Of a DNA stretch of 64,000 bases, positions 3,730 through 37,802 are shown piece by piece. The stretch covers positions 62,001-126,000 of IMG/VR virus record IMGVR_UViG_3300008113_000003; one strand, written 5' to 3'. Within the stretch, counting starts at the first letter, position 1. Each line of letters begins with the position of its first letter. The notes under the pieces are model-generated. The model ran no database searches. It was not told the DNA's origin and saw only the letters and a program-made list of their open reading frames with translations. A program made the position numbers and the translations under genes.

Positions 3730-4335
3730 TTATTTTTTTAAATAAATAGTAAAATCTTCGTTTTCTAAATAACCCTGTACTAATTTTGGTATTGCGATAT
3801 GCGATAATCGATTTACCATATTCTCTGGATTATATAGGTTTAAAGGTGATAACCCAGATCTTTCATCTAAGAAATTAAACGCCACGCCTTTATTACACAT
3901 ATTATAGGCCATCTCAATCTTTCTAATAACCTCATCCATACCCACAAACCAGGTAAATACGCCTGATCCAATTACATAGTCAAACTTTTCGTTTATCTTA
4001 TCAATGTCAGAACATATGAATTTTTTTGTCGGGTACAACTGATTAGCGTAAACGATATATTTGTGGTTAATATCGATACCTGTGTAATCTATATTATTAT
4101 GGTTGTTATTGGCTATGTAATCGTTTAAATGGCCCAACCCACAGCCATAATCAAGTAAAGATGAGTTATCTTCTATACCAATACCAAATAAGGTCTTAAA
4201 TCGCTTCCTTTGCGTTTCTTGGTCTGTCCAACCAACAGCCATTGGTGTTGTAATTGGGTAGTCTTCAAGGTACATATTGTACACGCCAATAATATCACTG
4301 CTCATCTGGTAACTTTGATTCAATATATAATTCAA
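3730..4335 (-). CDS. class I SAM-dependent methyltransferase (true start possibly 4305)
   Basis: Motif I LLDYGCGLG, YTGIDIN, FDYVIGSGVF and an N-terminal GW...Q..RF. Confidence 0.85.
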   Translation of the reverse strand: MNYILNQSYQMSSDIIGVYNMYLEDYPITTPMAVGWTDQETQRKRFKTLFGIGIEDNSSLLDYGCGLGHLNDYIANNNHNNIDYTGIDINHKYIVYANQLYPTKKFICSDIDKINEKFDYVIGSGVFTWFVGMDEVIRKIEMAYNMCNKGVAFNFLDERSGLSPLNLYNPENMVNRLSHIAIPKLVQGYLENEDFTIYLKK

Positions 4336-4640: not shown

Positions 4641-5102
4641 TTATTCGGTTTCTTTACCAGCTCTGTTAATAATATCAGGGTTTTGTTTAATTGTTTGTAT
4701 GGTTATTAAATCTTTAATTTTTGTTGTTGACCAATTATGAGATCTTGTCGTGTAAATAACTTTAATCGGTAAGTGGTCACCAGTAAATCTTTTACCGATA
4801 TAATCATCACCCAAGATTCTAATGTCTGGTTTGTAAAACTCCATTAACTTAATCAAATCCTCTTCTGTTTGGTATGTAACTACCTCGTCAATATATTTGA
4901 TCGCCATTAATGTTTTATACCTCTCATACAAAGGTATAACGGGCTTATACTTTGTAAACCTAGTTTCAGATGGGTCAATTTGTAAAAACACCATAAAATA
5001 ATCACAGTGTCTTTTAGCTTCCTCAAAAGTATAAATGTAACCTGGATGTAATAAATCAAAATTACCAGCTGTAAATCCTATAACCCCTTTTGTAGCGTCC
5101 AT
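4641..5102 (-). CDS. TagD/RfaE-like cytidylyltransferase
   Basis: FTAGNFDLLHPGY (HxGH-like), KPVIPLYER, IKYIDEV, ILGDDY and RSHNWSTT, corresponding to the RTxGISTT motif. Confidence 0.85.
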   Translation of the reverse strand: MDATKGVIGFTAGNFDLLHPGYIYTFEEAKRHCDYFMVFLQIDPSETRFTKYKPVIPLYERYKTLMAIKYIDEVVTYQTEEDLIKLMEFYKPDIRILGDDYIGKRFTGDHLPIKVIYTTRSHNWSTTKIKDLITIQTIKQNPDIINRAGKETE

Positions 5103-21865: not shown

Positions 21866-23740
21866 TTATAGTCTTATTTTGACATTAAACGACACAACAT
21901 CATACCAATACTTTTTAATTGGTTGTGTTGGTTTGCAAATCGCCAATAAATTGCCATCAGCATCATGGATACCTAATTGTGTGATGATAACAGGGTATAG
22001 ATCACCATTTGTTGATTTGAATGATGCCCAATCTTCCGTTTGGTCAACCCCCATCATATCCTTTGCCGTATCATTTGTTGATTTAAAGAACTCGTCTGAA
22101 GAGGCTAAACAAACAATATTTAAAGATTTTTCGGTGTTATAACTGTTGTATGACAACATATAATCGGTAGTTCCAGTATAAATAAACTGTGTGCTATCCC
22201 ATAGAATGTCAGTGCCATCTTTTGTTACGATTAATTCATATGTATCATTACTATCTGTGGTTCTAACATCGCCTCTACTATCAGCTGTTACTGGTGTATT
22301 TGATGAGTCCGATGTTATATCATAATTTTTAACCATGCTACTACCAGTACCAGACGTGTAAATGTAGCCGTCAAAAATGTTATGGAAATATGAATCAACG
22401 ATCAATGGATGTGTGATAACAATAAACCCTTTATCTAAGTAAGCCGCACCAACGCAAACATCATTTTTATAGTTGTATGTTGGTTTTTCTTGGGCACCTG
22501 GTGTGAAAACTCTAGTTCCGTTTATAACTTCGCTATATGCATCACCCCAGTTATTAAAGTTTACGTATGGGGGTTTAATCGCATCTGTAAATAATAAAAC
22601 AACGTTACTTTCATATGTTGTTGAACTAACTGTTGCCAAATCTGGTCTAATACCAAGGGTGCCAATACTAATATCTGGTTCAGATAATTTTTTATCCAAA
22701 TTATTATTTATTCCAGCATGGTTATATGTACCATATAGTTCAATTGTACCTGGACCTGTCCAACCAGTCATAATGCCTAAACGTTTTGGGTCAGTAACAC
22801 TTGATGTTGCACCTGTGTAGTAAGGTAATTCTAATTTAATAGTCTTACCATCAATGATTTCACCGTATTTGTTATTTGGTATCTCAAATATCATATACAA
22901 ATCGTTTGGAACTGGTAAATTCCATGGTTTGTTTGTTTCAAACTCATTACAACCAATTGTTTGCATAACAGTAGCGTAATACTCACCAGTGTAACCTGTT
23001 GTTGGGTGAACAAGTAGGGTATCTGTTGATCCCGTAAATGTGTTGTCAATAGCTGTCCATTTGTATGCAACACCATTTTTAGTAACAGCAACGGTATCAT
23101 TTGTACCAGCAGCGCTTAATACACCATAAGCCGATCTTGAGTATTTTTTATACTCTTCATTGGTAACAGGTAGATTAAGTGATTTTAGTAAGTTAGCAAA
23201 GATTGTGTTATTATCTTGTCTACCAACAAAGAAACCTGGTAAAATGTCAGTTGTGTTTAGTGTTGTTCCGCTAAATGTGTGATTTAGTTGTTGAAAACCG
23301 TTTGATAAATCAAAAGGTACACTTTCATTAACCAAAACAACACTTTCAACCGTTTTTAAGACGTTATAATTTGTTGGATTAACATCATATTCGATGTAAC
23401 CACGGCAAGCACCACCATATTGAGGTTGTGAAAACTGTGTATCGTTATATGCAACGGAAAAAACGTATGCATATCCGCCATTAGCCGCAATTTGTGCTGG
23501 ATTATCGCTAAGATTGGATAACGATTGGAATTTACCTAAAGCCGTATTTGAACCTAGGTTATTTAATTTTACGTATAAACCAGTATTTGTTGAAACCTCT
23601 GTGTGTGTAATTACAACATTTTGGGCTAATGTTGGTACATACGCTGGGTTTTCTAATAAATAGAACTCAGCTATACCATTCGTACCAGTACTAATGGTTC
23701 TACTATAATATGGGACTCTAACTTTTAATATCGCACTCAT
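21866..23740 (-). CDS. putative baseplate/tail structural protein (624 aa)
   Basis: T/S/N/G-rich; YGEIIDGK motif; C-terminal ITQLGIHDADGNLLAICKPTQPIKK resembles the tail-collar/DUF3751 C-segment. Confidence 0.7.
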   Translation of the reverse strand: MSAILKVRVPYYSRTISTGTNGIAEFYLLENPAYVPTLAQNVVITHTEVSTNTGLYVKLNNLGSNTALGKFQSLSNLSDNPAQIAANGGYAYVFSVAYNDTQFSQPQYGGACRGYIEYDVNPTNYNVLKTVESVVLVNESVPFDLSNGFQQLNHTFSGTTLNTTDILPGFFVGRQDNNTIFANLLKSLNLPVTNEEYKKYSRSAYGVLSAAGTNDTVAVTKNGVAYKWTAIDNTFTGSTDTLLVHPTTGYTGEYYATVMQTIGCNEFETNKPWNLPVPNDLYMIFEIPNNKYGEIIDGKTIKLELPYYTGATSSVTDPKRLGIMTGWTGPGTIELYGTYNHAGINNNLDKKLSEPDISIGTLGIRPDLATVSSTTYESNVVLLFTDAIKPPYVNFNNWGDAYSEVINGTRVFTPGAQEKPTYNYKNDVCVGAAYLDKGFIVITHPLIVDSYFHNIFDGYIYTSGTGSSMVKNYDITSDSSNTPVTADSRGDVRTTDSNDTYELIVTKDGTDILWDSTQFIYTGTTDYMLSYNSYNTEKSLNIVCLASSDEFFKSTNDTAKDMMGVDQTEDWASFKSTNGDLYPVIITQLGIHDADGNLLAICKPTQPIKKYWYDVVSFNVKIRL

Positions 23741-23746
23741 TTTATG

Positions 23747-23992
23747 TTATTTTCTTAATATTTGACCTTTTATTGTTATGTTTTTTGATATTGCGTATAC
23801 ATTATCATTATAGTCCCCAGTTATATCAGTAACTATTTGATTTACAGTTGATAACGCATTGTAGTTACCATCTTCATCTGAAATAGAAAAAGTAACTGGT
23901 TTAAAACCTTGTTCTAAAAGTCTTCTTCTACCCAACTCTGTTAGGTAAACTTTAATTTCTTCGGTGCTTCCGCTTTGTGGTACGAACCCCAT
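23747..23992 (-). CDS. small structural protein with LTxxGR tail-collar-like N-motif
   Basis: MGF...VYLTELGRRRLL..G....FSISD...Y, paralogous to the N-termini of 25744..26124 and 26124..28856. Confidence 0.7.
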   Translation of the reverse strand: MGFVPQSGSTEEIKVYLTELGRRRLLEQGFKPVTFSISDEDGNYNALSTVNQIVTDITGDYNDNVYAISKNITIKGQILRK

Positions 23993-24052
23993 GTTTTTAG
24001 TTTATTTAATTATATTAATTTTATTGTACAAATCAAGTTATTATTCCTATAT

Positions 24053-24061
24053 AATAAATAT
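24053..24061 (-). promoter_or_regulatory. ATATTTATT putative late-promoter motif
   Basis: Located in the 90-bp gap upstream of the start at 23992. Confidence 0.5.
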
Positions 24062-24083
24062 ATGGTTATTTTGTTTTTTCATT

Positions 24084-24713
24084 TTAAGTTTTAACTAGTA
24101 TTAGACTAATAACAACTTCTTCGGTAATTCGACTGTTAAATTCGCTATCAGCAAAACAGTTTATATTAAAGCTCAAATCAATTCCACCAACTCTCCTATC
24201 TGGATCATTTGATGTTTTACCGTAATGTTGTGCATCTAAGACGTTTAGGTTTAAAACTTCATAATAAGCCGAAAACTCTAATGTCGTTAACGGTAGTAAC
24301 ATTTTATTTGAACCTAGCAATCCAACTGGGGTGACAAGGGTTAACCTACCAATTAGTTTACCGTTATTTGTTAATTGATATACTTGGTAGTGTTTAGTAC
24401 CAACAATTGATTCGCTACCAGTTAAATTTGTCTCATCATATTCGTTAACCAGTATCAGTTTTAAAGTGTTTAAATTAGATTTTAATTTAGGGTCTCTAAA
24501 CTGTGCTTTAGCAAATGTTAAATTATTAAAATATATTGATTTTGTGTTTGGGTTCAAAATACTAAACTTACCCTCAGATTCACTGGTGATATATTTGTCT
24601 GGCCCAACAACACTGATACCTGGTGTATTTATGTAAAAATCAACTTTAGGTATACTAAAGTTAAAAATGGGCATTTTGTACTCGACTCTTCTTCCTACTG
24701 TTATTGTTGCCAT
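24084..24713 (-). CDS. putative structural protein (209 aa)
   Basis: Beta-rich composition; within the tail operon. Confidence 0.65.
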   Translation of the reverse strand: MATITVGRRVEYKMPIFNFSIPKVDFYINTPGISVVGPDKYITSESEGKFSILNPNTKSIYFNNLTFAKAQFRDPKLKSNLNTLKLILVNEYDETNLTGSESIVGTKHYQVYQLTNNGKLIGRLTLVTPVGLLGSNKMLLPLTTLEFSAYYEVLNLNVLDAQHYGKTSNDPDRRVGGIDLSFNINCFADSEFNSRITEEVVISLILVKT

Positions 24714-24718
24714 ATTAA

Positions 24719-25744
24719 TTATCCTATTTCTGGTAATGGGCCCCCGTCAACACTTGAACTACTTTCCATATCATAAACATAACCAACGGTTGTTTGTGAT
24801 ATTGTTCCATTGTAATCAACGATTATTTTAAACTCTTTGTTACCAGTACAAATATTTGAATTGAATAATTGTTCCGTACTAGCGTCTAGTTGAGCCGTGA
24901 CTTTAAACATATAACCACTCATAAAATTAAATGGGCTAATGTTAGGTTCCGCTGCTAAACCCTGGTTCTGCATTGTGTAGGTTACACCTATGCCACCAAT
25001 TACTGGTGTTGTAAAGGATGTTATGTAAAGATTACCACCACTACTAACTGTTGATGTTTGCGTTGTTCCGTATCCAGTATAACCAATGGCACCCTCTATC
25101 CATGAAACAGACATCGATGAAATCCCAGTATTTTCAATAAGATATACACTTGGGTGTGGCAAATAAGATACATTTATCGTATCACCACTTATATCAACCC
25201 AGTTATTAAAAAAAGACGTGCTTATATTAACATAACCGTTTGTATATGGATTACTTGTTGATCCACTATAAGCGCCAGCGTAATCATAAACTTTTAAATC
25301 CGATAATTTAAGTTTTTTCTTGTTATTACCGAAGACAGCGTAAACATCAACAGCGATAGTATACCCATTTGAACCAACGGTATAGTTTTCCCCATCACCA
25401 TTAAAATTAAAATACAGGTCAAATTCTGTATAATAAACCTCACCTTTAACCAAAGTATTGATTTTTTTAAATTGGGTGTAATCAACGGCTATAGTTCTCG
25501 AGGCACGTGAGTTATTACCGATAAAACCGTTACCCATGGGCATATTATAAAAATCGGAAGTTTTTTCAACCAGATTATAAGAACCGTTTATAAATTCAAA
25601 ATCGGATAAATCATTTGATCTATACGGGTGAAAATCGTAATTTTCTATTAAAGCGTTAACACCATTTGTATTATATGATGCGTAATCATAAGGCGCTTTA
25701 AGGTGTATACCGTTTAAATTTTTAAGGTTGTATTGTCTAGCCAT
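24719..25744 (-). CDS. putative structural protein (341 aa)
   Basis: N/Y/T/G-rich; TAATG-coupled within the tail operon. Confidence 0.65.
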   Translation of the reverse strand: MARQYNLKNLNGIHLKAPYDYASYNTNGVNALIENYDFHPYRSNDLSDFEFINGSYNLVEKTSDFYNMPMGNGFIGNNSRASRTIAVDYTQFKKINTLVKGEVYYTEFDLYFNFNGDGENYTVGSNGYTIAVDVYAVFGNNKKKLKLSDLKVYDYAGAYSGSTSNPYTNGYVNISTSFFNNWVDISGDTINVSYLPHPSVYLIENTGISSMSVSWIEGAIGYTGYGTTQTSTVSSGGNLYITSFTTPVIGGIGVTYTMQNQGLAAEPNISPFNFMSGYMFKVTAQLDASTEQLFNSNICTGNKEFKIIVDYNGTISQTTVGYVYDMESSSSVDGGPLPEIG

Positions 25745-26124
25745 TAGTCCTTATATGTTATTATTTTAATCGTTTCTGTCGAAAGGTCTGGATCGTATGC
25801 AATGTAATTGTTTTCAGCTCTTTGGTTAACGCCCAAAAAACCATGAGTGAACAGTATATTGTTATCCACAGAGCCTCGTTTAGAGTCCTGTGTATAGACT
25901 TCACTTGTATTATTAACTTCTGTGGAATCATAAAATTTTATTGTTGGTATTGTTTGTCCAGTTAAAACATGGGGATCAACACCGCTCATCTGGTCATAGT
26001 TTGAGTTGTCTATTAACGAAAAATATTTAATTTCATTCCTAAAACCATTGTTTACGAAAGCTTCTCTACCCTTGTCCGTAAGGTATATCTCAAAAGTATA
26101 TTTATTTCTTTTTATAAATCCCAT
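25744..26124 (-). CDS. small structural protein with LTxxGR N-motif
   Basis: MGFIK...IYLTDKGREAF..GF...KYFSLID..NY. Confidence 0.7.
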   Translation of the reverse strand: MGFIKRNKYTFEIYLTDKGREAFVNNGFRNEIKYFSLIDNSNYDQMSGVDPHVLTGQTIPTIKFYDSTEVNNTSEVYTQDSKRGSVDNNILFTHGFLGVNQRAENNYIAYDPDLSTETIKIITYKD

Positions 26125-28856
26125 TAGAAGTCAATTGTAGCTTGTATTACGACCATATCAGAATTATATTTTCTTGTTATTGGTTCTGAAAATTTACCAA
26201 TAGCCACCATAACACCATCAGTATCAAAAATACCTATTTGTGTAAACGCAACTTTATCTTGGTCAGCATTAAAAGTTGGGTTATCGGTTGATATATATTG
26301 ATTAGGTAGCACGTTACAAGTTAATTGTGTTTTATATATTGTGGCTTTAATATCAGTTTCTATATTACCAAAGAAAAATACCTCATCACCAAAGCTAAAA
26401 TCTGTGGATGAGATACCAGGTATGGTAATATAATCACTTAAATTATAGATATCCGTCTCACTATTGTCAAGCATATATTGATCAATATTTACTCTAAGAG
26501 CTGATATGGTATCTTTTGTTAAAACATTTGTTGATACTGTTTGACCAGCACCAGAATTATCTAAGTAGAACATTGTTATTTCACTACCCTGTGTTGGTGT
26601 GAAATTTAACTCAACACGTCTATCGTCAATTGTTTCATTTGTAACAAAAACACCATATGTTGTTGCATTTAATAACATACCTTTATAGAACAACCAAACT
26701 GTTGAGTTATTTGGTTGTTTATCCAATTTAAGTGATATCCTGTTAGGTGCTATTGTTGATTTATAAATTGCGTTAGCGTTTGTGTTTGAGTTAATTGTTG
26801 CTAATGAAGGTACTGTTATAACTTGTTTAATCGTCTTAGATGTAATACTAGTACCTGTTAAGTAATAAATTTGTAAAAGATCTGGGCTTACACCATAACC
26901 TTGTCCAAAAACAATAACCCTTCTATTATTAGGCCCAACAGCGTATGTTGTTGGATATGCATAATACGTTCCGTCACTCAAAGTATCATCCGATGCTTGT
27001 GTTTGTACAGTACCGTTAAAAATCACAATTATTTCACCAACTGGTGTATTCCCTAATTCAAAAACATCAAAAACGTTAACATCAATAACCGAATGAGATG
27101 CTAATTTATCAACATCGTAATCAAGAATATCAGCGTGTAATTCAAAATTAGTACCGCTTATATTCATAACACCAGTCACACAACCATTTGTACCTAAAAA
27201 CCCACTCACATCAATATAAGCCCAGTTAGTTGGGTCAGGTTTAATACCAGTTGACGACTTTTGCCACAACATTAGTATTTGATTGGTTTTATAACCAATA
27301 CCAGTTTCATCCTCATAATCTTTTAAGAATGAAAATTCGGTGTAGTTTGGATCCTCTATTTTTTTATTAAACTGAAATAAAACATCTTTTGGTGTTGTGG
27401 TTGTGTTTTGTATTGTTGTATAATCCTCACAATGCATACCAGTTATACCAGCACTATCAATAAACATATACGTTACATACAAATACTCACCTGGCTGTAA
27501 AATACCAGTTGTGCTTGTGTTACCACAAACACCTGGTTCTGTTAAATTTAACAGCGGTTTTGGTAATGTCCAGTTTCTGTTTGATTTATAAGATAAAGCT
27601 GATAATAGTTCAGGGTCTTCAATTATAACAATTTTTTCATCAACAAAAACTTTACCAACAACATTTTTATCGTTTTCTTGGTCAACAAGATCATAGTATG
27701 GGTATTTTGTAAGGCCTAAACCAGCCTGTGTTGTCTCATTTAAATATTGTAGCTGAGTATCAGCCACAAACGTGTAACCAACCGTATCAGCAACACCATT
27801 TGTAAATTGTTGTTTATGCCACATTATATGAGGAACTTTAAGTTTAAACGTTGAACGGTAAAAACCTTCACCGTAAAAGTTAGAAACCGTGTTATTTGTA
27901 TAATGTATAACCCCTATTTTTGAATTGGTGTTGTAATAGTTAAAATTTATTGCCGTACCTAAATAATCTTTTGATACAACATCGTACTTAGATTTGTCGA
28001 CTGTTGAGTCTAAACCTATTATGTCCTCAATATTAATAATATTCATATTCCAAACAGGAACATCCAGTTCAGATTGTGTATTATTGTTTGAGAAATCTAG
28101 TAACCCCCCTTGCCAGTAAGCTATTGGGCTTGCCTGATCATAATAATCTTTAATGGTATCTTTACCAGGGTAAATAAACGCATCAACTTCATAAGAATCA
28201 AAGGTTGGTAAATCACGATCAACGATAATTGTGATTGTTGTACCGCTCGTCAAACCAGTTAAATTATATGTGGGTGCACTATTAATAGATTTAATGACGT
28301 ACATCAAATATTGAACGGGTTCAACTGTTATTTGATCAGCTGGTACTTGTGTTGTTGTATAATTTGTTGTATAACCGCTTGTTTTAAATTTAACAAACAG
28401 ATAGTCACCCTCTTTTATGGTTGTGTCATATGAAGAATTTATTGTACCACCATTATAAGTTAAATCAAGAGCTGTGGAACTAGTAGCTGTTGTACCAGTT
28501 AATGGACCAGCTAACCACAAATTTGAATCAATGCTTATTGTTGAGCCAGTTGTATCATAATTAAAAAAACCTCTTTCTATTGCTGATGCGTAAACCTCAT
28601 TTGGTATTGCATTAACGATTGTTATTGGGTTTAGAACGTTAATACCGTCATATGTTAATGGTAAGCTCAAACCTAATACATTATCCGATGGTCTTAAAAT
28701 ATTAACATTTGGAAATGAATCGTTTGAATAATCCATTTCGCCATCCCCAAGACCAAAATATGTGAAATTTAAGGTCCCTTCAGCTAGATTTCTCCTACCG
28801 TTATTGGTTAATTTAACATTAACTAACGGATCGTTTTTCTTAATTATATAGCTCAT
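26124..28856 (-). CDS. baseplate/tail-fibre-attachment protein (910 aa) with tail-collar-like N- and C-motifs
   Basis: N-terminal VKLTNNGRRNLA.G...TYFGLGDGEMDY and C-terminal FTQIGIFDTDGVMVAIGKFSEPI, both P2 gpH/DUF3751-like. Confidence 0.72.
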   Translation of the reverse strand: MSYIIKKNDPLVNVKLTNNGRRNLAEGTLNFTYFGLGDGEMDYSNDSFPNVNILRPSDNVLGLSLPLTYDGINVLNPITIVNAIPNEVYASAIERGFFNYDTTGSTISIDSNLWLAGPLTGTTATSSTALDLTYNGGTINSSYDTTIKEGDYLFVKFKTSGYTTNYTTTQVPADQITVEPVQYLMYVIKSINSAPTYNLTGLTSGTTITIIVDRDLPTFDSYEVDAFIYPGKDTIKDYYDQASPIAYWQGGLLDFSNNNTQSELDVPVWNMNIINIEDIIGLDSTVDKSKYDVVSKDYLGTAINFNYYNTNSKIGVIHYTNNTVSNFYGEGFYRSTFKLKVPHIMWHKQQFTNGVADTVGYTFVADTQLQYLNETTQAGLGLTKYPYYDLVDQENDKNVVGKVFVDEKIVIIEDPELLSALSYKSNRNWTLPKPLLNLTEPGVCGNTSTTGILQPGEYLYVTYMFIDSAGITGMHCEDYTTIQNTTTTPKDVLFQFNKKIEDPNYTEFSFLKDYEDETGIGYKTNQILMLWQKSSTGIKPDPTNWAYIDVSGFLGTNGCVTGVMNISGTNFELHADILDYDVDKLASHSVIDVNVFDVFELGNTPVGEIIVIFNGTVQTQASDDTLSDGTYYAYPTTYAVGPNNRRVIVFGQGYGVSPDLLQIYYLTGTSITSKTIKQVITVPSLATINSNTNANAIYKSTIAPNRISLKLDKQPNNSTVWLFYKGMLLNATTYGVFVTNETIDDRRVELNFTPTQGSEITMFYLDNSGAGQTVSTNVLTKDTISALRVNIDQYMLDNSETDIYNLSDYITIPGISSTDFSFGDEVFFFGNIETDIKATIYKTQLTCNVLPNQYISTDNPTFNADQDKVAFTQIGIFDTDGVMVAIGKFSEPITRKYNSDMVVIQATIDF

Positions 28857-28868
28857 TTTTTGTTTTTA

Positions 28869-28878
28869 TATAAATATC
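28869..28878 (-). promoter_or_regulatory. GATATTTATA putative late-promoter motif
   Basis: Ends 12 nt upstream of the ATG at 28856. Confidence 0.6.
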
Positions 28879-28892
28879 GTTATTTTATAAAT

Positions 28893-31800
28893 TTATGGTA
28901 GGCTTATGTAATCTCTTGGGTCAACCGTGTCAATTGTTAAATTATTTGCACCGTCAAAGTCAATTTTAACAACTCTACCTTCACTTATATCTTTTAATTT
29001 TATTGTTCTTGTTATTAATCTACCAACATTTGTTTTTGTTGACACAAAATACCCATTTTCAATACCATTATCGTTTGTATCAAATAATGCGTAATTATCC
29101 ATGAAACCTGACTTATATCTACTAAGATTTCTTGTTACATCAGTTTTAACACTAATTGTAATAGATTCTCCGTAATTAACAACAATGTTTTCGTCAAAAT
29201 ATTTATTTTTTGTTAACACCCTATTGTATAAAGTACTATTAGATGTGTTATTTTCAACAATAACAGTGACATTTGAGGCACCGTTTTGGTTGATGATTAA
29301 TCTAACTTCTGGTTTAAATCCAGTTATTAACTCAACATTTTCAGGTAATGGTGGTGCTGTCATTATTCTAGGTTTTAATTGGTCTAATTTTGTCAAATCA
29401 GCTTCAAATAAAACACCAAATATTGTTTTTGCTGTATGCCCACAAGGATTTGTTATGGTTAAACCACCAATAAACTCACCAGTTAACGGTAATCCGTTAT
29501 CATCTCTTTCATAATAATAGTCCATTATTATGTCATTTTCTATTCTTCTAAATCCAGTTAAACCGTATTCTTTAACACTTCTAAGGTTTGTGTTTTTAGC
29601 ATCAAATAGTTTATTAACACCGTTTAATAATTTAGCGTTCGTTGTTGCACCACTAAATGTTTGTTCGGTAAATGATGTTTTTAATTTTAAATTCTTATCA
29701 AAGAAATATAAATTATTTTTTGTGGTTGTATCAAGTGATTCGATTTTACCTTCATAAATTTTAACTTTACACCTATCTTTTTTAAATGTAAATTTATTAA
29801 CTAACATAAAGTCACGTTCTTCCCAGTTAGTTGATAGATGAGGTTCTGTTGTTGTTGAAAATGATCCAACCCCATTAACCGTTCTATATAAAACGTTTCT
29901 ACTAACAGTGTATTTTTTACTGTGATAATTAGAATTACTATTATACGTAGTACCAGTCGCTATAAAACCTAATATACCGTTATCTTCAGTTGTTCTTGCT
30001 AAACGGTGGAACATTGGTTGTATATTAAATGGGCCGTTAATGTACATCCAAAGTACTTGGCCACATAATAATGGCGATAAGAAACTTGGGACTACTTGTG
30101 TAAGCGTATAACTATTTTGTATTAAATTAGTGTCTTGTGTACCACTAAAAGTCATTAAACTGTCCGTAGTACCCGTGTAATTTAATGTTGATCCAGTAAT
30201 CCTAAAATAACTTAAAATGTCAGAATTTTCCGATATTGTATTGGTATCTCCAGGTAATGTTGTGTAGAACATATCTGCAATCAATATATTTGTTGACCCA
30301 GTAAATGGTAAAGAATAAGTATAACCACCTGAGTTAGCAGTTGTTGGTAATAAATTTTTAACCCTATAAGCCGATGGCCCAAGCGAATATAGATTTGGAT
30401 TGGTTGTTACACCAGTAATATCTTTAGTCCAAAATGGGTTATTTGCGTTTGCACCAGTTATTGGCATTTCATACCAGCCAGTACCACCTGTTGGTGATGT
30501 TCCAGCGGTAGTACCCGTTGGGTTATACCAAAAACTATATTTAGAATCAATCGAAAAATTAGATCCTGGGTAATAAACGATTTCACCAGCAAAATAATCA
30601 TTTGTTGGGTCCCAGGTTAACGGTTTATTATAAACATATTCATATAAATCATATATTGCTGTTGAACCAGAACCACTAATATAGACTTTAGCAATATCAC
30701 CTAAATTTAATTTTTGAGTTGGTGATCCGTTTAATAGTATTGGTTCTGAATATCTGTATGGTGCAACATTTGGTTTAACGATTTCATAGTTAGGTAACTT
30801 ATCGTACCCTATTGGTGTAAATCTTTTTAGATCGTAATTTTCAATAGGTATAAAACAAGTTCTGGCACCATTTGGCCTGTATATTGGGTGTATTTCAAAT
30901 GTACTTGATGAACCAGATATTTTACACAAATGATCCGCTGTTATATCCTCAATACAAACATATAATCTATCAACATCAATTGTTTCAACTGTTGTACCAC
31001 TTGTAGTTTCTACAACTTTTCTATAATCATTTAATTTAATTTTAACTATGTCATTTATAACATAGTTATTTACGCTAGAACTAAAATAAGGTACGACTGC
31101 TAAAATATCTTTATATAGTTTTGTACCGTAAACACTATTCTCCTTTTTAAAGTAACCGTATGTTGAACCGCTGATTAGTTTATATCTTTTTTTAGAGATT
31201 AAACTTTCGGATAAATTGGTGTTAAAATCTAATTGGTTGTAGTCGGCAAGACCCTCATCATATCCAATAAAATCAATGGTTGTACCAGTAACTTCAACAT
31301 CATTCTTATACAATTTTAAAAAGGTATAATCTAATTTATTAAGGTTAGCGGTTCTAAGTTTTGGTGTTTTACCGATAAAAATACTTTTTGTTATATTAAC
31401 ATTTTCAATTGTTTGTGGTGTGTTACCTAAATAATTACCTGTAGATGTAATCGTGTACGATTTTTCTAACCCAGGAAATGAGTAGTATATTTGAACACTG
31501 TCGCTATAATACGTAGGAGTATTCGTTAATTCTTTACCTCTAACTGTTAACTCAAAATCAACATAATCGTTATTAAAGTTTTTTTCGTAAATTGAAACAT
31601 CACCGATTTGCGAGGTAGCCTTGTTTTTCTCAAAATATTTACCATACAATAAACCAAAATTATTAACTTCATCATACGACTGATTTATATTTAGTTTATG
31701 TACAAATTGGTACCTGTCAAAACTATTATCTATTTTAGTTAAGTATCTATCAATTGTGTGGTCATCGTTATAACCAATTGGCTCTATTGATAAAGCATCT

Positions 31801-34800
31801 TCAAAATAGTGGTTGTTAATTAAACCCCTACCACCATTAAAGTAAACCCTAAATCTAGGGTCATCTAATGAATCGTAGGTGGTTTCATTAGCGTAATCTA
31901 TATCAATTGTCTCATATCTAGATAGTTTACATGACTTACCTATCGGTTCAATAACCAAATAAACTTTTGTGTCGACAAAAAATACCCCTTCATGTGTAAA
32001 ATTAACCACTCTAAGTAAACTTTCATCAGCGCCACTAAAATTAAATAATTGCTCATATATTATAACCCCAAATTGGTCCATTAATTTAATTAAAACCGAT
32101 TGTTGTGTAGCAAATTCTGATTCAAAAAACAGGTCAATATCAAATTTAAAGTACTTATTTTGTTTTATTAAGAAATAACCATTACTTAAACTAATATTAC
32201 GATTAACAATATTGAAATTTGTATTAAGTGACTCAAAATCAATATAGTTATTTTTGTCTGGAATCAATTCTAAAGATTCGACTAATGTCTGTGTTGCGAT
32301 TGAATTCTCGTCTGGTGTGTAAAAAGGACCAAGTTTGTCTTCATCTAGTGAATAAAACCCGTCAAATGATAAAGTATTAGAATCACTTATATATAATTCA
32401 TCATTTAATAAATTATCAATAACTTTATAGGTTTCCTGATCCGTTGCACCACTATATACTTGATACAAGTATAATGATTTAGTTAAATTAAATGATATTC
32501 TATCCGATAAAGGGTTAATTAAATTCTTTTTAAGATAGGCGGAATTTATATGCATATAAGGATCCGTTGTTGTCCTACCTGTATAATGTTGATACATACC
32601 AGGAACCACTGTTGTGACTGTTGTACCAGTTGGTGTTGTTGTTGTACCAGTAACGGTATCAAACGTAACTTCATAATAAGTTGAGCTATGTTTTACAATA
32701 TCACCTTTATAATAAACCACACCGTTTGTCCAAATATTTTCTTTCTGGTATGGTATAATCCAATTAGATGCCGCACCGTACAAAGCATTATTTGGTTTTG
32801 TTGTTGCGGTATTTTTTGAATAACCGTAATATTTGGCTTGTTCAATTGTTAAATATTTACCAGATTCATCATAATAATCGGTAATACCAGCTGTAGACAT
32901 TGATATTGTATCTCCAGTAAATTTAAAATAGCATGTATGTGGTTTTGGTATTGGGCATAAGAAGTCTACGTCAGCTGCTAAATGTGCATGCCCAAAAGAT
33001 ATTGCCTCAATGTAATAATTTCTTTCATCAATTGATGTCGCATCCAATGGAACGCCATCCAATTTTAGATCTATAATTTTATTTGTTGATCCAAAATAAC
33101 CGCTGTTATAGAATGTTAAATAACCAGTTGTTGATGTAATTGAGCTAGAGTGGTTAACAATACCCGACCCACCACCTTCACTCACTAAAGTTGTTCCAGC
33201 TGTTGTTTTACCGTCATGTATCGTTAAATCATCCCCAGTATTTGTTGTAAAAGTTATTTGGTATGTACCAGGACCTTCTGGTAATTTAACAACATGAGTG
33301 TTACCCACAATAGGGTCTGGTGTTAATAATATGGTATTTGAATCTTTAAATGTTAATGTTTTTGCATCAGCATCAAAAGGTATGTACTCATATACCATCT
33401 CACCATTAACCGTTAATGAATCAGGGGTATGCTTCTGCATTAAAACCAAATCAGTTATTTCAACATCATTCGGAAAATTCCTCATATTCCAAATTGTAAA
33501 ATAATTTGTTGTAAACGTTAAATCTTTTGAGTATGTTCTCGTTGTACCGCTAAGACCACTAATACCATCTAATTGTGTACCACTTATATAACCATCATAG
33601 ATAAGTAAATCATCTAAACCTTCTAATGTGAATGTCACCTTATATGTACCAGGGCCATTTGGTAATGTTATCGTATCCGTATCATAACCAGCGTCTAATA
33701 AAACATAACTCTTTCTAAACTCTGGATAGGTATTAATCTGAATTGGATTAATGAATAGAGTGTTGGTATTTAATCTATATAATTTATTGTCATATGTGAT
33801 AAAAGTACCATTTTTTTGCGTTTCAGTAAGTGGTATAACAAATAAATCGGATATGTAACAATCAGAACCGTAGTTAAGATCATTATAAAACGATAGTGAG
33901 CTTGTACCAGCTGTTACTACTGAACTATAAGTAAGCGTAGAACCTGAGGTGTATGGTAAATTAGCCAATAACGGGCTACCGTTATTTGGACCATTATAAA
34001 CAACAAGATCATCGTTGCTCGTGTATTTAAATGTAAGTAAATAATCACCTGATCCAGGTAATGTAATTTGTTTACTAATTGGGTAATAATTAGGCCCCAC
34101 GGTGTTATCACCTATACCAAATGATGGTACGTTACCTTTATTTACATTTCCGTAATATAACAAATCGTTACCAAAATCTAAGCCATCTTCCCATTTATAT
34201 ATTTGTACATCTGAATTACAAGCATCTTCTATACCATAGTAAAAACCGAAATATTCATTAATAGTCGGATCGTATCCAATGTAGTTTTTACCTTTAAAAC
34301 CTTCAAATGTAAATGTTGAGGATTCCCCAACAATTGGTAATTTATTGGTACCAATTGGATTAAATGGGTTTGTTAAACCTTGGTTAACAGGTCTTTTTGC
34401 TAATTCCTGAAATTCAGAACCATCTGTACCTAACCAACTAACGCTATTGTTTAAACCATGTTTATAGATAAATTTATTATCCATAAACTTAGAGTTCTGT
34501 ATTTTCTTACCCGCATTTAATATTGTTGTTGCTGGTGTAAATTGTTGAACTAATTTTACCCAAGATGAGTCAAAATAACTTAAGAATTCTAAATCTTTTG
34601 TGTTTGTCATTGGTGACGAAACGGAATTTAGATAGTCGTAATATATTTTTGTTAGCGTTGGGTATGTTTTAATTGTTTTTCTGTTATCTGGCTTGATGTA
34701 ATTATCAAGTGATTTTTGTAAAAACTGGTTAAAAGTTAAATCACCACCATTAATTGTTGGTACAAAAGCGAAGTTTAAATCACTATTAATATCAACAGCA

Positions 34801-36911
34801 TTTCTATTGTAATATCTATAAACAGATAGATCAAATATCTTATCTGAAGCTAAATAAACCTCTAATTCCTTAGAGTTAATAACTAATTTAGAGTGTGGTT
34901 CATAGTATTCAGTATACCCAACAGAGTCTTCTGATAACCTTAAAACCTCTTCAGTGCTATAAACCCAAGATTTTACGTTATCGGTATATCTATCAACCGT
35001 AAACATACTCACACCACCTCTTTTTTCAAAAGCTTGTATGTACTGTTTACCGAAATCATATGGTCCGAAATTTTTACCGTCATTTGTTGTTGTAAACCCA
35101 CTTTCTTGGTACCTAACATCATGCGGTACTGTTGGATAACCATCTTTATCAAAAGGTAATAATGTTAGTAACGTTTCATCTGAATAAGCCCCACGGTATA
35201 TTTCAAAGGATTTGTCTGTGAAGTTAACTGGGTTTCTCGCAATGTATACCTTTTCATCTATTTCAAAAATAGAATCTGGTAAACCAACTAAATTTAAAAT
35301 AAACTCAATTGATTTTCTGGTTCCCTTTGATTTCCACAGATAATAAGCGTTTATAAAGATTCTTCTCCATAGCTCAATGTCAATTTCAGCTGGAGTTAAC
35401 CCAGGTTCAACATTAAGATCCTTAATGTTGAATAGGGATTCGATGATAGTGTTCTCATCCTCAACATTATAGGTCTCAAAACCCAACATGTTACCAAAAT
35501 TTTTAACCAACAAATCTGGAATGTTCTCAATTTTGTCATAAGTTAAATTTGTCATGAAGGTTATACCATCAATGTATTTTCTTATGTTATCGAAATTCCT
35601 ACCAATGAGACTAAACATTAGATTTATTTTTCTATCATCGGTGTCAAACTCCTTTAAAGAATCTGTTGTTAAAAATCTGGTAATCAGATTTGTTTTTGTT
35701 GCATCAAAATCATCCGATATCTGATTTAATTTTGTCAAATAAGCATCAAAATCTGTTGTAAAAATATCGATGTTAGTTTCATCTAATTGTGGGAATACCA
35801 GGTGTTCTTCTGTGTTTAATCTTGCACCAGAATCTGTTACTTTTGTATACCTAATAACCGATGAATAAACTTTTAGATCATAGTTATAATCCATCAAAAA
35901 TTTACCCATGTCGGATAAACTATTTTGGAATTCATCGAATTTTTCTAACGAAGGTTTTAACCAGAATGTTGTGTTAACCGTTTGGTTATTATTAACCACA
36001 CTACCAAATGGGTTACCCTGTACAACCAAATATATACCATTATCGGTATCAGTTTGTGAACTAGGTAATGTTACATTTAATATTTTATATTCTGTGTCAT
36101 TAAAATAAACAACAAAGTCGCTATAGCGTTTAGAAAAGTTCCTAACTGGATTTATATTTTCTTCGTCAGTAATAGTTGTACCAGTTGCTGTAAATTCAAC
36201 GCCAAAAGGGTTATCAATGTTATTTAAGTTTATCTTAAATTCAGAGGTATCTTTGTTACTGTTGTAACTATAATCTGTTACTGTTGGTGATAACAAACCC
36301 AAAACATTTAATTTGATTGATGCTGGGTATTTTTGTGATATCTCAACAATAGTATTTTTAACCGTTTCTTTTAGTGGTGAATATAAAACATAATTTTCAA
36401 GTTTTTTCTTATCAAAAAGAATGGTTACTGTTAAATTGTTTTCAATCTTAGCGTTAATAGATTCAACTAAATTAGTTGATGACTGTGTATTCCTGTTTGG
36501 GTTTAGGTTATTAATCGATTGAGCTGTGTATGATCTTGTTTCAGGACTAATATTTGCGGTTTTACCCTCAACTGGTCTTTGTGAAACACTTGTATTAATC
36601 GAAAAATTACCTAAAGTAAAGAATGGGTCACCAGAAATCTCATTATTATTGTTTGCAAATTGCAAACCAACCGCTTTATCACCAATGTTACCCCTTCCAG
36701 ATATAGCATTTGGGACACCTTGTCTTTTTACAAATCTTAGTGCCTGTTCATAGGCCAAATACGTTGCACAGGGCACATATTTATTTTGCCCATTAATATT
36801 ATATGTTCTGTATCCATTACAGCCTAGACTAGCCGAAGCTGCAAGAGCCGCTTCTGGTGTATCGTATAAATCAGCTATTAACGGTGTGTTTGAGTAACTA
36901 AGATTAGCCAT
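28893..36911 (-). CDS. giant baseplate wedge/receptor-binding protein (2672 aa): P2 gpI/T4 gp7-like core with accessory domains
   Basis: IPDLLV...G...ELWRRI...YLWKSKGTRKSIEFIL (gpI-like KGT motif), three CUB-like repeats, and CBM5/12-like WxxxxxYxxGDIV motifs. Confidence 0.75.
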   Translation of the reverse strand: MANLSYSNTPLIADLYDTPEAALAASASLGCNGYRTYNINGQNKYVPCATYLAYEQALRFVKRQGVPNAISGRGNIGDKAVGLQFANNNNEISGDPFFTLGNFSINTSVSQRPVEGKTANISPETRSYTAQSINNLNPNRNTQSSTNLVESINAKIENNLTVTILFDKKKLENYVLYSPLKETVKNTIVEISQKYPASIKLNVLGLLSPTVTDYSYNSNKDTSEFKINLNNIDNPFGVEFTATGTTITDEENINPVRNFSKRYSDFVVYFNDTEYKILNVTLPSSQTDTDNGIYLVVQGNPFGSVVNNNQTVNTTFWLKPSLEKFDEFQNSLSDMGKFLMDYNYDLKVYSSVIRYTKVTDSGARLNTEEHLVFPQLDETNIDIFTTDFDAYLTKLNQISDDFDATKTNLITRFLTTDSLKEFDTDDRKINLMFSLIGRNFDNIRKYIDGITFMTNLTYDKIENIPDLLVKNFGNMLGFETYNVEDENTIIESLFNIKDLNVEPGLTPAEIDIELWRRIFINAYYLWKSKGTRKSIEFILNLVGLPDSIFEIDEKVYIARNPVNFTDKSFEIYRGAYSDETLLTLLPFDKDGYPTVPHDVRYQESGFTTTNDGKNFGPYDFGKQYIQAFEKRGGVSMFTVDRYTDNVKSWVYSTEEVLRLSEDSVGYTEYYEPHSKLVINSKELEVYLASDKIFDLSVYRYYNRNAVDINSDLNFAFVPTINGGDLTFNQFLQKSLDNYIKPDNRKTIKTYPTLTKIYYDYLNSVSSPMTNTKDLEFLSYFDSSWVKLVQQFTPATTILNAGKKIQNSKFMDNKFIYKHGLNNSVSWLGTDGSEFQELAKRPVNQGLTNPFNPIGTNKLPIVGESSTFTFEGFKGKNYIGYDPTINEYFGFYYGIEDACNSDVQIYKWEDGLDFGNDLLYYGNVNKGNVPSFGIGDNTVGPNYYPISKQITLPGSGDYLLTFKYTSNDDLVVYNGPNNGSPLLANLPYTSGSTLTYSSVVTAGTSSLSFYNDLNYGSDCYISDLFVIPLTETQKNGTFITYDNKLYRLNTNTLFINPIQINTYPEFRKSYVLLDAGYDTDTITLPNGPGTYKVTFTLEGLDDLLIYDGYISGTQLDGISGLSGTTRTYSKDLTFTTNYFTIWNMRNFPNDVEITDLVLMQKHTPDSLTVNGEMVYEYIPFDADAKTLTFKDSNTILLTPDPIVGNTHVVKLPEGPGTYQITFTTNTGDDLTIHDGKTTAGTTLVSEGGGSGIVNHSSSITSTTGYLTFYNSGYFGSTNKIIDLKLDGVPLDATSIDERNYYIEAISFGHAHLAADVDFLCPIPKPHTCYFKFTGDTISMSTAGITDYYDESGKYLTIEQAKYYGYSKNTATTKPNNALYGAASNWIIPYQKENIWTNGVVYYKGDIVKHSSTYYEVTFDTVTGTTTTPTGTTVTTVVPGMYQHYTGRTTTDPYMHINSAYLKKNLINPLSDRISFNLTKSLYLYQVYSGATDQETYKVIDNLLNDELYISDSNTLSFDGFYSLDEDKLGPFYTPDENSIATQTLVESLELIPDKNNYIDFESLNTNFNIVNRNISLSNGYFLIKQNKYFKFDIDLFFESEFATQQSVLIKLMDQFGVIIYEQLFNFSGADESLLRVVNFTHEGVFFVDTKVYLVIEPIGKSCKLSRYETIDIDYANETTYDSLDDPRFRVYFNGGRGLINNHYFEDALSIEPIGYNDDHTIDRYLTKIDNSFDRYQFVHKLNINQSYDEVNNFGLLYGKYFEKNKATSQIGDVSIYEKNFNNDYVDFELTVRGKELTNTPTYYSDSVQIYYSFPGLEKSYTITSTGNYLGNTPQTIENVNITKSIFIGKTPKLRTANLNKLDYTFLKLYKNDVEVTGTTIDFIGYDEGLADYNQLDFNTNLSESLISKKRYKLISGSTYGYFKKENSVYGTKLYKDILAVVPYFSSSVNNYVINDIVKIKLNDYRKVVETTSGTTVETIDVDRLYVCIEDITADHLCKISGSSSTFEIHPIYRPNGARTCFIPIENYDLKRFTPIGYDKLPNYEIVKPNVAPYRYSEPILLNGSPTQKLNLGDIAKVYISGSGSTAIYDLYEYVYNKPLTWDPTNDYFAGEIVYYPGSNFSIDSKYSFWYNPTGTTAGTSPTGGTGWYEMPITGANANNPFWTKDITGVTTNPNLYSLGPSAYRVKNLLPTTANSGGYTYSLPFTGSTNILIADMFYTTLPGDTNTISENSDILSYFRITGSTLNYTGTTDSLMTFSGTQDTNLIQNSYTLTQVVPSFLSPLLCGQVLWMYINGPFNIQPMFHRLARTTEDNGILGFIATGTTYNSNSNYHSKKYTVSRNVLYRTVNGVGSFSTTTEPHLSTNWEERDFMLVNKFTFKKDRCKVKIYEGKIESLDTTTKNNLYFFDKNLKLKTSFTEQTFSGATTNAKLLNGVNKLFDAKNTNLRSVKEYGLTGFRRIENDIIMDYYYERDDNGLPLTGEFIGGLTITNPCGHTAKTIFGVLFEADLTKLDQLKPRIMTAPPLPENVELITGFKPEVRLIINQNGASNVTVIVENNTSNSTLYNRVLTKNKYFDENIVVNYGESITISVKTDVTRNLSRYKSGFMDNYALFDTNDNGIENGYFVSTKTNVGRLITRTIKLKDISEGRVVKIDFDGANNLTIDTVDPRDYISLP

Positions 36912-37800: not shown

Positions 37801-37802
37801 AT

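Follow-up and report, generated by a model that had tools for sequence, protein, structure and literature searches.

What does a short motif that recurs in the tail proteins of a large uncultured aquatic phage signify? The window analyzed here is a 64,000-nt stretch (positions 62,001 to 126,000) of IMG/VR record IMGVR_UViG_3300008113_000003, and a sequence-only reading of its tail genes (positions 21866 to 36911; Table 1) had noted that the motif [S/T]-G-x-T is strongly enriched in the encoded proteins and had proposed that it is a glycosylation sequon for a phage enzyme. We find that the observation holds and that the interpretation is partly supported. The motif is about five times overrepresented on the capsid, sheath, and tail proteins, and the phage carries a homolog of the TibC-type protein O-glycosyltransferases. 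On this basis, the motif is probably a tag for coating the virion with sugars, although glycosylation itself is inferred from sequence and no experiment has shown it.

Table 1. Coordinates of the features considered (window coordinates unless noted; genome coordinates are window coordinates +62000). Sites are [ST]GxT motifs, observed against expected.
Position	Strand	Feature	Sites	Observations
28893..36911	-	2672-aa tail or host-recognition protein	21 against 3.3 to 3.5	33 of 34 homologs enriched, many sites positionally conserved; model of residues 1300-2480 contains TNF/C1q-like jelly-roll domains, as in phage fiber tips
26124..28856	-	910-aa tail protein	5 against 1.4	includes the adjacent pair TGLT-SGTT; orthologs have 5 to 10 sites; the L028 ortholog has a run of five tandem units
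25744..26124	-	126-aa protein	1	LTGQT
24719..25744	-	341-aa protein	2 against 0.54	orthologs have 1 to 4 sites
24084..24713	-	209-aa protein of the same gene block	0	
23747..23992	-	81-aa protein	1	QSGST; site present in L028 (TGTT) and lost in L027 (KETE)
21866..23740	-	624-aa tail protein	6 against 1.0	104 distant representatives together hold 208 against 54.8; in the model, sites 157 and 522 in strand-loop-strand, 236 and 248 in loops, 309 and 325 at strand ends
44626..46440	-	Baseplate_J wedge protein (Pfam and PHROG hits); internal negative control together with the five proteins at 36904-44623	1 against about 2 (all six proteins)	0 sites except one in the 262-aa protein, here and in most relatives
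3730..4335	-	201-aa SAM-dependent methyltransferase (Pfam methyltransferase domains); possible glycan-decorating enzyme		homologs in both other motif-positive genomes (G001, LR756501) and in none of four motif-negative genomes
4641..5102	-	153-aa nucleotidyltransferase (CTP_transf_like, PF01467)		NCBIfam TagD-like 66.8 bits and rfaE_dom_II 64.9 bits, both far below their cutoffs
genome 199261-200532		423-aa TibC/Aah-family protein, outside the window		about 6 kb downstream of the major capsid gene

Enrichment of the motif in the tail proteins

The sequence-only reading had counted about 20 sites in the 2672-aa protein, almost all after the first ~900 residues and against a rough expectation of about 3, smaller numbers in five other proteins, and none in NrdA. 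Every count was reproduced exactly or nearly (19 of the 21 sites in the 2672-aa protein lie after residue 900, and NrdA has none). The proposed comparison with composition-shuffled proteins was carried out: pooled over the seven proteins, 36 sites were observed against 6.7 to 9.1 expected (z = 11.5 for the expectation of 6.7). Shuffling inside 20-residue windows still gave z = 9.5 (the maximum of 2,000 shuffles was 20 sites), and shuffles in windows of 20 to 200 residues rule out local composition or low complexity as the cause. An unbiased scan of all three-residue patterns with up to two gaps (about 48,000 gapped tripeptides) ranked TG.T first (22 against 3.9; p = 2.7e-10) and SG.T second. 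Each position is sharply specific: position 1 is T (5.8-fold), S (4.7-fold), or A (2.8-fold); position 2 is G only; position 4 is T (5.3-fold) or S (2.5-fold); and position 3 is free but avoids P, K, and E. A hydrophobic residue is favored at position -1, and beta-branched residues are favored after the motif.

The signal resides in the protein and not in the DNA. We found 127 in-frame occurrences against 5 and 5 in the other two frames, and all Ser codon families are used; the ACT bias at position 1 is a genome-wide Thr-before-Gly codon-pair effect. The N-x-S/T motif is not enriched. The sequence-only reading had described the sites as scattered singly and not in tandem repeats, which needs correction. 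The sites are mostly single, but there are adjacent pairs (TGLT-SGTT in the 910-aa protein; 1421/1428, 2239/2246), and relatives hold true tandem arrays, such as (TGIT)16 inserted in one relative, so that the four-residue unit behaves as a module. Searches of PHROG and Pfam with the tail proteins returned nothing, and megablast and tblastn against isolate phages returned no close relative.

Distribution across proteins and genomes

Elsewhere in the 206-kb genome, only the major capsid protein, the tail sheath, a collagen-like fiber, and a 2921-aa protein are enriched. The capsid protein, the sheath, the collagen-like fiber, and the tail proteins together hold 64 sites against 11.9 expected, while about 195 other ORFs hold 20 against 21.7. 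In the Gp23-type capsid protein, all sites (residues 125-260) lie in the stretch between the blocks that align to T4 gp23, which corresponds to the surface I-domain (PMC9546572). In the sheath, the sites align to the gp18 96-300 region, and none lies in the conserved C-terminal third. The motif is therefore not specific to the adsorption apparatus, as the sequence-only reading had supposed, but also marks the outer domains of the capsid protein and the sheath. The enrichment also holds across 121 capsid homologs, and among homologs sites turn over while their density is kept. The number of capsid sites is, however, too noisy a proxy for motif status (0 to 7 per protein; some phages with strongly enriched tail proteins have one capsid site).

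The enrichment is not a generic property of tail fibers. Structural proteins of T4 hold 17 sites against 11.4 expected, while the same scan recovers the known GxHxH boxes of T4, and the Microcystis phage Mel-JY01 and the Flavobacterium phage immuto are negative. Two syntenic lineages, designated L028 and L027 (62 to 80% identical to each other; L027 is represented only by a 35-kb contig), differ sharply: L028 has 39 sites against 7.4, while L027 has 7 against 4.6. Only 6 of the 40 sites of L028 are kept in L027, and no replacement motif was found. This concerted loss from all tail genes at once, with the proteins remaining intact, indicates that the motif is not needed for folding.

These data bear on the possibility that no modification occurs and that [ST]GxT is a favored beta-turn or strand-start sequence accumulated by the beta-rich surface domains of this lineage as a structural or evolutionary habit. 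Of 18 sites in confidently modeled regions, 10 lie in short strand-loop-strand turns, 6 in longer loops, and 2 at the end or start of a strand, in models of moderate confidence (pLDDT, 72.5 and 68.6) for which neither a background rate nor solvent exposure was computed. Gly is often retained in the lineage that lost the motif, so the sites are genuine turns as well, and Gly and Thr at positions 2 and 4 are conserved only modestly above background. On the other hand, the motif occurs in unrelated folds (the capsid I-domain region, sheath insertions, and jelly-roll fiber domains), is absent from the homologous capsid and sheath proteins of T4, Mel-JY01, and immuto, was lost concertedly in L027, forms tandem arrays of 16 units, which cannot be turns, and recurs in proteins of the phage genome LR756501 that have no detectable homology to the proteins here. 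We consider this explanation unlikely.

A TibC-type O-glycosyltransferase homolog and associated genes

A search for glycosyltransferases in the rest of the genome identified a 423-aa protein that matches TibC (PDB 4RAP/4RB4; E = 6e-61; residues 66-397 against 60-389), with no other PDB hits at E values up to 1. The protein scores 326 bits against the NCBIfam equivalog model TIGR04414 (autotransporter strand-loop-strand O-heptosyltransferase; cutoff, 200), while LPS heptosyltransferase models score at most 38 bits. The catalytic base Asp110 and the sugar-binding residues Lys230, Arg286, and Trp305 (PMC4358343) are identical, Thr226 is Ser, and the four iron-finger Cys residues (339, 342, 358, and 370) all align (C-x-x-C ... 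W-C ... F-E-C). The residues of the beta-hairpin thumb (Phe265 and Val266), which together with an N-terminal beta-barrel builds the dodecamer, are not conserved, the region has an insertion, and the Pfam TibC_1st hit is weak (E = 0.065). The donor-selectivity residue Pro300 is Gly, and no heptose pathway genes (GmhA, PfkB kinase) were found in the 69%-complete genome. No autotransporter was seen among the phage ORFs examined, and the proposed substrates are virion proteins.

At least seven other glycosyltransferase genes are present in the genome, several of them beside the capsid gene. Neighbors of the TibC homolog include a 316-aa GT4 (fused to the TibC homolog in two other phages, G001 and LR756501), a 917-aa GT4, an FkbM methyltransferase, and a NodU-type carbamoyltransferase; a 406-aa GT-B and a 478-aa double GT2 lie elsewhere. 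The sequence-only reading had suggested that the cytidylyltransferase and the methyltransferase at 3.7 to 5.1 kb could supply or decorate sugars. The 153-aa cytidylyltransferase-like protein scores equally as TagD-like and RfaE-domain-II-like and cannot be assigned on these scores, and only the 201-aa methyltransferase follows the distribution of the motif across genomes.

In a comparison of only eight genomes from about three independent lineages, motif enrichment was found only in genomes with a TibC homolog (this phage, G001, and LR756501) and in none of three without one (T4, immuto, and LR756508). Part of this gene set co-occurs with the motif in an unrelated 735-kb phage, LR756501. That genome shares only 32 of 214 proteins with the phage studied here and has no detectable capsid homology, yet it shares the motif, its sequence context, and tandem arrays; PHROG annotation of its enriched proteins returned almost nothing. 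Of seven proteins present in both other motif-positive genomes and absent from all four motif-negative ones, three are glycosyltransferases and one is a methyltransferase. However, two phages with a TibC homolog above the cutoff (Mel-JY01 and LR756504) show no enrichment. TibC alone therefore does not predict the motif, and the 316-aa GT4 and the 406-aa GT-B track it better. Motif counts in the 10-kb flanks of 80 TibC-homolog loci were uninformative (248 against 211), because the flanks are mostly enzymes.

These exceptions leave room for a reading in which the motif is recognized in trans but not by the TibC homolog, the modification being started by another phage glycosyltransferase (the 316-aa GT4 or the 406-aa GT-B) or a host enzyme, or not being a sugar (e.g., phosphorylation or acylation). 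The 316-aa GT4, the 406-aa GT-B, and the 478-aa GT2 are present only in motif-positive genomes, and Ala is tolerated at position 1, which fits poorly with position 1 being the acceptor. Nevertheless, PDB and NCBIfam searches gave nothing specific for these enzymes, none of which has a known protein-modifying relative (PDB searches with the 917-aa, 406-aa, and 316-aa glycosyltransferases returned no useful hits). TibC/Aah is the only family in the genome with proven protein Ser/Thr O-glycosyltransferase activity, its acceptor geometry being consistent with the modeled sites, and the fusion of the GT4 to the TibC homolog argues that they act together. We regard this alternative as possible but unlikely.

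Discussion

The explanation that we favor, as somewhat more likely than not, is that [T/S]-G-x-T is an acceptor motif for O-glycosylation of virion proteins by phage-encoded enzymes in the host cytoplasm, before or during assembly. The TibC homolog would be the most likely initiating enzyme, and the neighboring enzymes would extend and decorate the glycan, with the 406-aa GT-B, the 478-aa GT2, and the 201-aa methyltransferase as further candidates. The result would be a sugar coat on every exposed part of the particle (i.e., the capsid I-domain, the outer sheath domains, and the fibers). Counting against this explanation are the two phages with a TibC homolog but no enrichment, the Gly in place of Pro300, the lack of heptose pathway genes in the 69%-complete genome, the tolerance of Ala at position 1, and the reported lack of a linear consensus and preference for Ser of known TibC/Aah enzymes. 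Our analyses establish the enrichment of the motif, its specificity, its distribution across genomes and proteins, and the family membership of the enzyme, whereas the presence of a covalent glycan, the action of the enzyme on these sites, the residue that is modified, the sugar and its donor, and the biological benefit (shielding, stability, or adsorption) are inferred from metagenomic sequences. The central idea of the sequence-only reading, a sequon recognized in trans by a phage enzyme, thus gained substantial indirect support from the glycosyltransferase genes, the co-occurrence in an unrelated phage, the concerted loss in one lineage, and, in the models, sites at loop starts between strands.

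A further alternative is that the motif is a ligand contact element displayed all over the virion (e.g., for weak binding to host polysaccharide, mucus, or particles), while the glycosyltransferases serve other functions, such as remodeling of the host envelope or DNA modification. The motif is restricted to the virion surface, phage glycosyltransferases of the GT2, GT4, WbsX, and RgpF types are usually assigned to polysaccharide synthesis, and the loss in one lineage could reflect a change of host. However, a four-residue motif scattered singly in different structural contexts is an unlikely binding site, the TibC family acts on proteins and not on lipids or DNA (PMC4358343), and the gene set and the motif co-occur across unrelated phages. 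This alternative appears very unlikely.

It remains possible, though slightly less likely than not, that large aquatic phages of at least two unrelated lineages use a phage-encoded TibC/Aah-type module to write a glycan coat onto every exposed virion protein at this defined sequon, which lineages gain, expand into tandem arrays, or discard as a unit. This would be the first linear sequon for cytoplasmic protein O-glycosylation in a bacterial virus. If so, virion glycosylation in phages would be predictable from sequence (i.e., from a sequon plus an enzyme marker), and the TibC/Aah family would extend from virulence adhesins to viruses. It would also suggest that many abundant uncultured freshwater and marine phages carry a sugar coat that could affect adsorption, stability, grazing, or immune-like recognition. 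At least 237 IMG/VR stretches encode a relative of this TibC-type gene. Our literature searches found no paper linking this enzyme family to phages, and in the one cultured phage that has it, the domain lies under a feature annotated as an FkbM methyltransferase. The sequon could also serve as a portable glycosylation tag for engineering.

Comparison with known systems

The general O-glycosylation sequon of Bacteroidota, D-(S/T)-(A/I/L/V/M/T), is likewise a short linear sequon on surface proteins, but it is a different motif, as the sequence-only reading had stated, works outside the cytoplasm, and is not enriched in these proteins (26 against 22.4; z = 0.8). Because the sequence-only reading took it as the sequon of the host, which is not established, the comparison is only a contrast. 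In mycobacteriophages (Freeman et al. 2023, as cited in PMC12619734), phage-encoded glycosyltransferases near structural genes glycosylate capsid and tail subunits. There, the glycans sit on C-terminal extensions of the capsid and tail-tube subunits and the enzymes are not of the TibC family, whereas the sites here, for which biochemical proof is lacking, form an internal four-residue motif on many proteins. In the collagen-like Gly-x-Thr repeats of Bacillus BclA and in the capsids of chloroviruses and mimiviruses, Thr in G-x-T units or noncanonical sequons on capsid proteins carry glycans made by dedicated or virus-encoded enzymes. This genome also has S/T-rich collagen-like fibers, but the enzymes and hosts differ, and the unit here has four residues and needs S/T/A before Gly.

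The closest system comprises the bacterial autotransporter heptosyltransferases (BAHT; TibC and Aah) acting on TibA, AIDA-I, and Ag43, of which the 423-aa phage protein is a member at the sequence level. BAHTs are cytoplasmic and add many O-linked sugars to Ser/Thr on folded beta-rich surface proteins, with acceptors at the start of short loops between strands (PMC3835316, PMC8151025). Aah and TibC are reported to have no linear consensus, to prefer Ser, and to act on beta-helical autotransporters, whereas a sharp linear motif with Thr preferred is seen here and the proposed substrates are virion proteins of several folds, which would be a new substrate class for the family.

Genomic setting of the motif-bearing proteins

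The window (bases 62001-126000) is part of a 206,296-bp linear IMG/VR viral record (33.5% G+C; estimated 69% complete), and nearly all of its genes lie on the minus strand. It carries replication and nucleotide-metabolism genes (i.e., NrdA/B, a DnaB-like helicase, and a UvsX-like recombinase) together with a contractile-tail baseplate module that starts at a Baseplate_J protein and runs down to the interval with the seven ORFs studied here. These seven ORFs had no Pfam hit, and their only PHROG hit was a marginal one (E = 0.00097; endolysin family) for the 341-aa protein. No isolate phage was close to this phage; the best matches were a Flavobacterium phage and a Microcystis phage at about 25 to 33% identity. 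The locations of these and other features are listed in the table below.

Locations of the features. Window, coordinates within the window; genome, coordinates of the whole record (all genome features lie outside the window).
Feature	Location	Length (aa)
Seven ORFs of the motif-rich interval	window 21866-36911	
Baseplate_J protein	window 44626-46440	
DUF7788/DUF2828 protein	window 2-1366	
Very large ORF, continuing beyond the window	window 56820-64000	2413
RNA-repair and translation-rescue gene cluster (locus L018)	genome 3494-16968	
Giant collagen-like G-x-y proteins (loci L026, L021)	genome 202003-206010, 52036-55713 and 55728-57950	
Glucosaminidase (PF01832)	genome 200569-201144	191
Protein with sixteen tandem units in relative G001	G001:C1:118543-120108 (IMG/VR 3300042350_004528)	521
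Homologue of that protein in this genome, without the insert	genome 178549-179922	
Fusion protein with TibC-like and GT4 domains in Microcystis phage Mel-JY01	PP395634.1 4747-8430	about 1230

Enrichment and specificity of the [ST]GxT motif

The enrichment claimed by the sequence-only reading is real, and all of its counts were reproduced. Pooled over the seven proteins, we found 36 [ST]GxT sites, while 6.7 were expected from whole-protein shuffles and 9.1 from shuffles restricted to 20-residue windows (z = 9.5 to 11.5; none of 2000 shuffles exceeded 20). In an unbiased scan of about 48,000 three-residue patterns, TG.T ranked first (p = 2.7e-10) and SG.T ranked second. Each position is specific: position 1 takes T, S or, more weakly, A; position 2 takes only G; position 3 is free but avoids P, K and E; and position 4 takes T or, more weakly, S. 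The sequence context is also biased, with a hydrophobic residue or Thr at -1 and I/T, N/T/G, Y, and T at +4 to +7. The signal lies in the protein, since the DNA pattern occurs 127 times in frame, against 5 and 5 times in the other two frames, and all Ser codon families are used. The preference for ACT at position 1 is a general Thr-before-Gly codon-pair effect: across the whole genome, Thr followed by Gly is encoded by ACT in 46 to 76% of cases and never by ACC, against 20 to 23% ACT elsewhere, a strong bias that is unrelated to the motif.

Distribution across the genome

On the basis of a simple ORF call of the whole record, the enrichment is limited to about ten proteins, which hold 64 sites against 11.9 expected, while about 195 other ORFs hold 20 against 21.7. 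The enriched proteins are the window's tail proteins, a 2921-aa protein, the tail sheath (1021 aa), a collagen-like fibre (551 aa), and the Gp23-type major capsid protein (527 aa). The Baseplate_J protein and its five downstream neighbours have 1 site against about 2 expected, and the motif count of the very large 2413-aa ORF is near expectation (4 against 2.2). Four collagen-like G-x-y proteins rich in S, T, and G hold many sites, but at their compositional expectation. Some of the collagen-like proteins are giant and made mostly of Ser, Thr, and Gly; one of them (1335 aa) appears, by eye, to end in a sequence resembling a tail-fibre intramolecular chaperone (S74-like), and the relative G001 (see below) has a 5316-aa version next to its glycosyltransferase cluster.

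In the capsid protein, all sites fall at residues 125-260, the stretch between the two blocks that align to T4 gp23. In T4, this stretch is the insertion domain, which forms protrusions on the capsid surface (PMC9546572). In the sheath, all sites align to the region of T4 gp18 residues 96-300, and none lies in the conserved C-terminal third.

Conservation, expansion, and loss among relatives

Thirty-three of 34 homologues of the 2672-aa protein, down to 32% identity, are enriched (z = 5 to 21). Many sites keep their alignment column in 22 to 30 sequences, with S/T exchange at position 1 and free variation at position 3, while many other sites are lineage specific. The 121 capsid proteins examined average 2.9 sites against 0.5 expected, and 104 representatives of the wider family of the 624-aa protein hold 208 against 54.8. 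In a complete 298.8-kb relative (G001), TG.T is the top pattern of the whole proteome, as it is in this genome. A 521-aa protein of G001 with no assigned function carries sixteen perfect tandem TG[ITV]T or SGIT units as a 64-residue insert, and the homologue in this genome, which lacks the insert, is exactly 64 residues shorter. Shorter tandem runs occur in several proteins.

The motif is not a general property of such proteins. T4 structural proteins showed no enrichment (17 against 11.4), although the same scan recovered the known His boxes of T4. Microcystis phage Mel-JY01 (40 against 40.4) and the Flavobacterium phage immuto have no enriched protein, although their capsid and sheath proteins are homologous to those of this phage.

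One Logan contig (L027; ERR4067840_178899), a 35-kb sequence that is the only one representing its lineage, is syntenic with the other loci and 62 to 80% identical to its nearest relative (L028) in the main tail proteins. Over all ORFs of each locus, L027 has 7 sites against 4.6 expected, while L028 has 39 against 7.4. Only 6 of the 40 L028 sites are kept in L027; Gly is often retained, but positions 1 and 4 have changed, and no other pattern is enriched. The proteins are intact, so the motif is not a folding requirement, and its maintenance depends on something that this lineage lacks. The lineage is also generally poorer in Thr, being depleted in all of its tail and baseplate proteins (e.g., from 0.095 to 0.067) and not only at motif sites.

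Predicted structural context of the sites

AlphaFold models were made of residues 1300-2480 of the 2672-aa protein (pLDDT, 72.5) and of the 624-aa protein (pLDDT, 68.6). Of 18 sites in regions of usable confidence in these moderate models, 10 lie in short strand-loop-strand turns with position 1 at or just after the strand end, 6 lie in longer loops, and 2 lie at the end or the start of a strand. Predicted domains of the large protein resemble TNF/C1q-like jelly rolls found in phage fibre tips and spore-surface proteins. A purely structural explanation of the motif fits the turn location, but it does not fit the spread across folds, the absence from homologous proteins of other phages, the concerted loss, or the tandem arrays.

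Candidate modifying enzymes

The genome encodes an unusual number of glycan enzymes. Directly after the capsid gene lie a 917-aa GT4, an FkbM methyltransferase, and a 316-aa GT4, followed by a NodU-type carbamoyltransferase and a 423-aa protein. Elsewhere in the genome are a double GT2, RgpF, WbsX, another GT2, and two weak GT-B proteins. The 423-aa protein is the key find. Its only PDB matches are TibC (E = 6e-61 over nearly the whole length), and it scores 326 bits on the NCBIfam equivalog model for the "autotransporter strand-loop-strand O-heptosyltransferase" (cut-off, 200), while the LPS heptosyltransferase models score below 40 bits. The catalytic Asp110, Lys230, Arg286, Trp305, and the four iron-finger cysteines described for TibC (PMC4358343) are conserved, whereas Thr226 is Ser, Pro300 is Gly, and the thumb residues differ. 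Directly after this TibC homologue lies a glucosaminidase, which could be a lysin or a glycan-trimming enzyme. The RNA-repair and translation-rescue cluster comprises SmpB, an RNA ligase, two HAD_SAK_2 proteins, a cREC_REC domain protein, and a poly(A)-polymerase/CCA-adding head domain.

Co-occurrence of the motif and the enzymes

Among 50,697 phage records, only Mel-JY01 and three huge uncultured phages have a TibC homologue. In the cultured phage Mel-JY01, the TibC-like domain sits in a fusion protein with a GT4 domain, and the record annotates the feature under the match as "methyltransferase FkbM." In IMG/VR, 237 stretches encode a relative, and the best 80 that were kept are at least 62% identical.

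We compared eight genomes. The motif is enriched in this genome, G001, and LR756501 (735 kb), all of which have a TibC homologue, and it is not enriched in T4, immuto, or LR756508, which have none. It is also not enriched in Mel-JY01 or LR756504, which do have one. These two phages show that TibC alone is not sufficient: either acceptor specificity differs between homologues, or another enzyme of the set defines the motif. LR756501 shares only 32 of 214 proteins with this phage and has no detectable capsid homology, yet it shows strong enrichment (e.g., 22 against 1.6 in a 1350-aa protein), the same sequence context, and tandem units. A large paralogous family with G-E-x-x-W/E-E-x-W motifs dominates the pattern scan of its proteome.

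Seven proteins of this genome have homologues in both other motif-positive genomes and in none of the four motif-negative ones. Four of the seven are glycan related (i.e., the 316-aa GT4, which is fused to the TibC homologue in G001 and LR756501; the 406-aa GT-B; the double GT2; and the window's 201-aa methyltransferase). The remaining three are a collagen-like protein, an RNA-repair HAD protein, and a phosphoribosyltransferase-like protein. Since the sample is small and this genome and G001 are related, the association is suggestive rather than statistically strong. The DUF7788/DUF2828 protein is shared with G001, LR756508, and LR756501.

A putative virion glycosylation system

The most economical reading is a phage-encoded O-glycosylation system that would mark turns of virion proteins, inferred to be exposed, at [T/S]-G-x-T. 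In this view, the TibC homologue is the likely initiating enzyme, and the fused or adjacent GT4 and other enzymes would extend and decorate the glycan. Family precedent points to position 1 as the modified residue, but the tolerance of Ala there and the strict Thr at position 4 point to position 4. Our analyses establish the enrichment of the motif, its distribution, and the family membership of the 423-aa protein by sequence, while the modification itself and the action of the enzyme on these sites are inferred without experimental evidence. The proposal of the sequence-only reading that a phage enzyme modifies Ser/Thr of these proteins is supported in part. Large aquatic "moraphages" with four core glycosyltransferase families and predicted Bacteroidota hosts were described in a 2025 paper (PMC12619734). 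TibC and Aah are cytoplasmic enzymes that add many heptoses to Ser/Thr of folded autotransporters, whereas the substrates proposed here for the TibC homologue are virion proteins.
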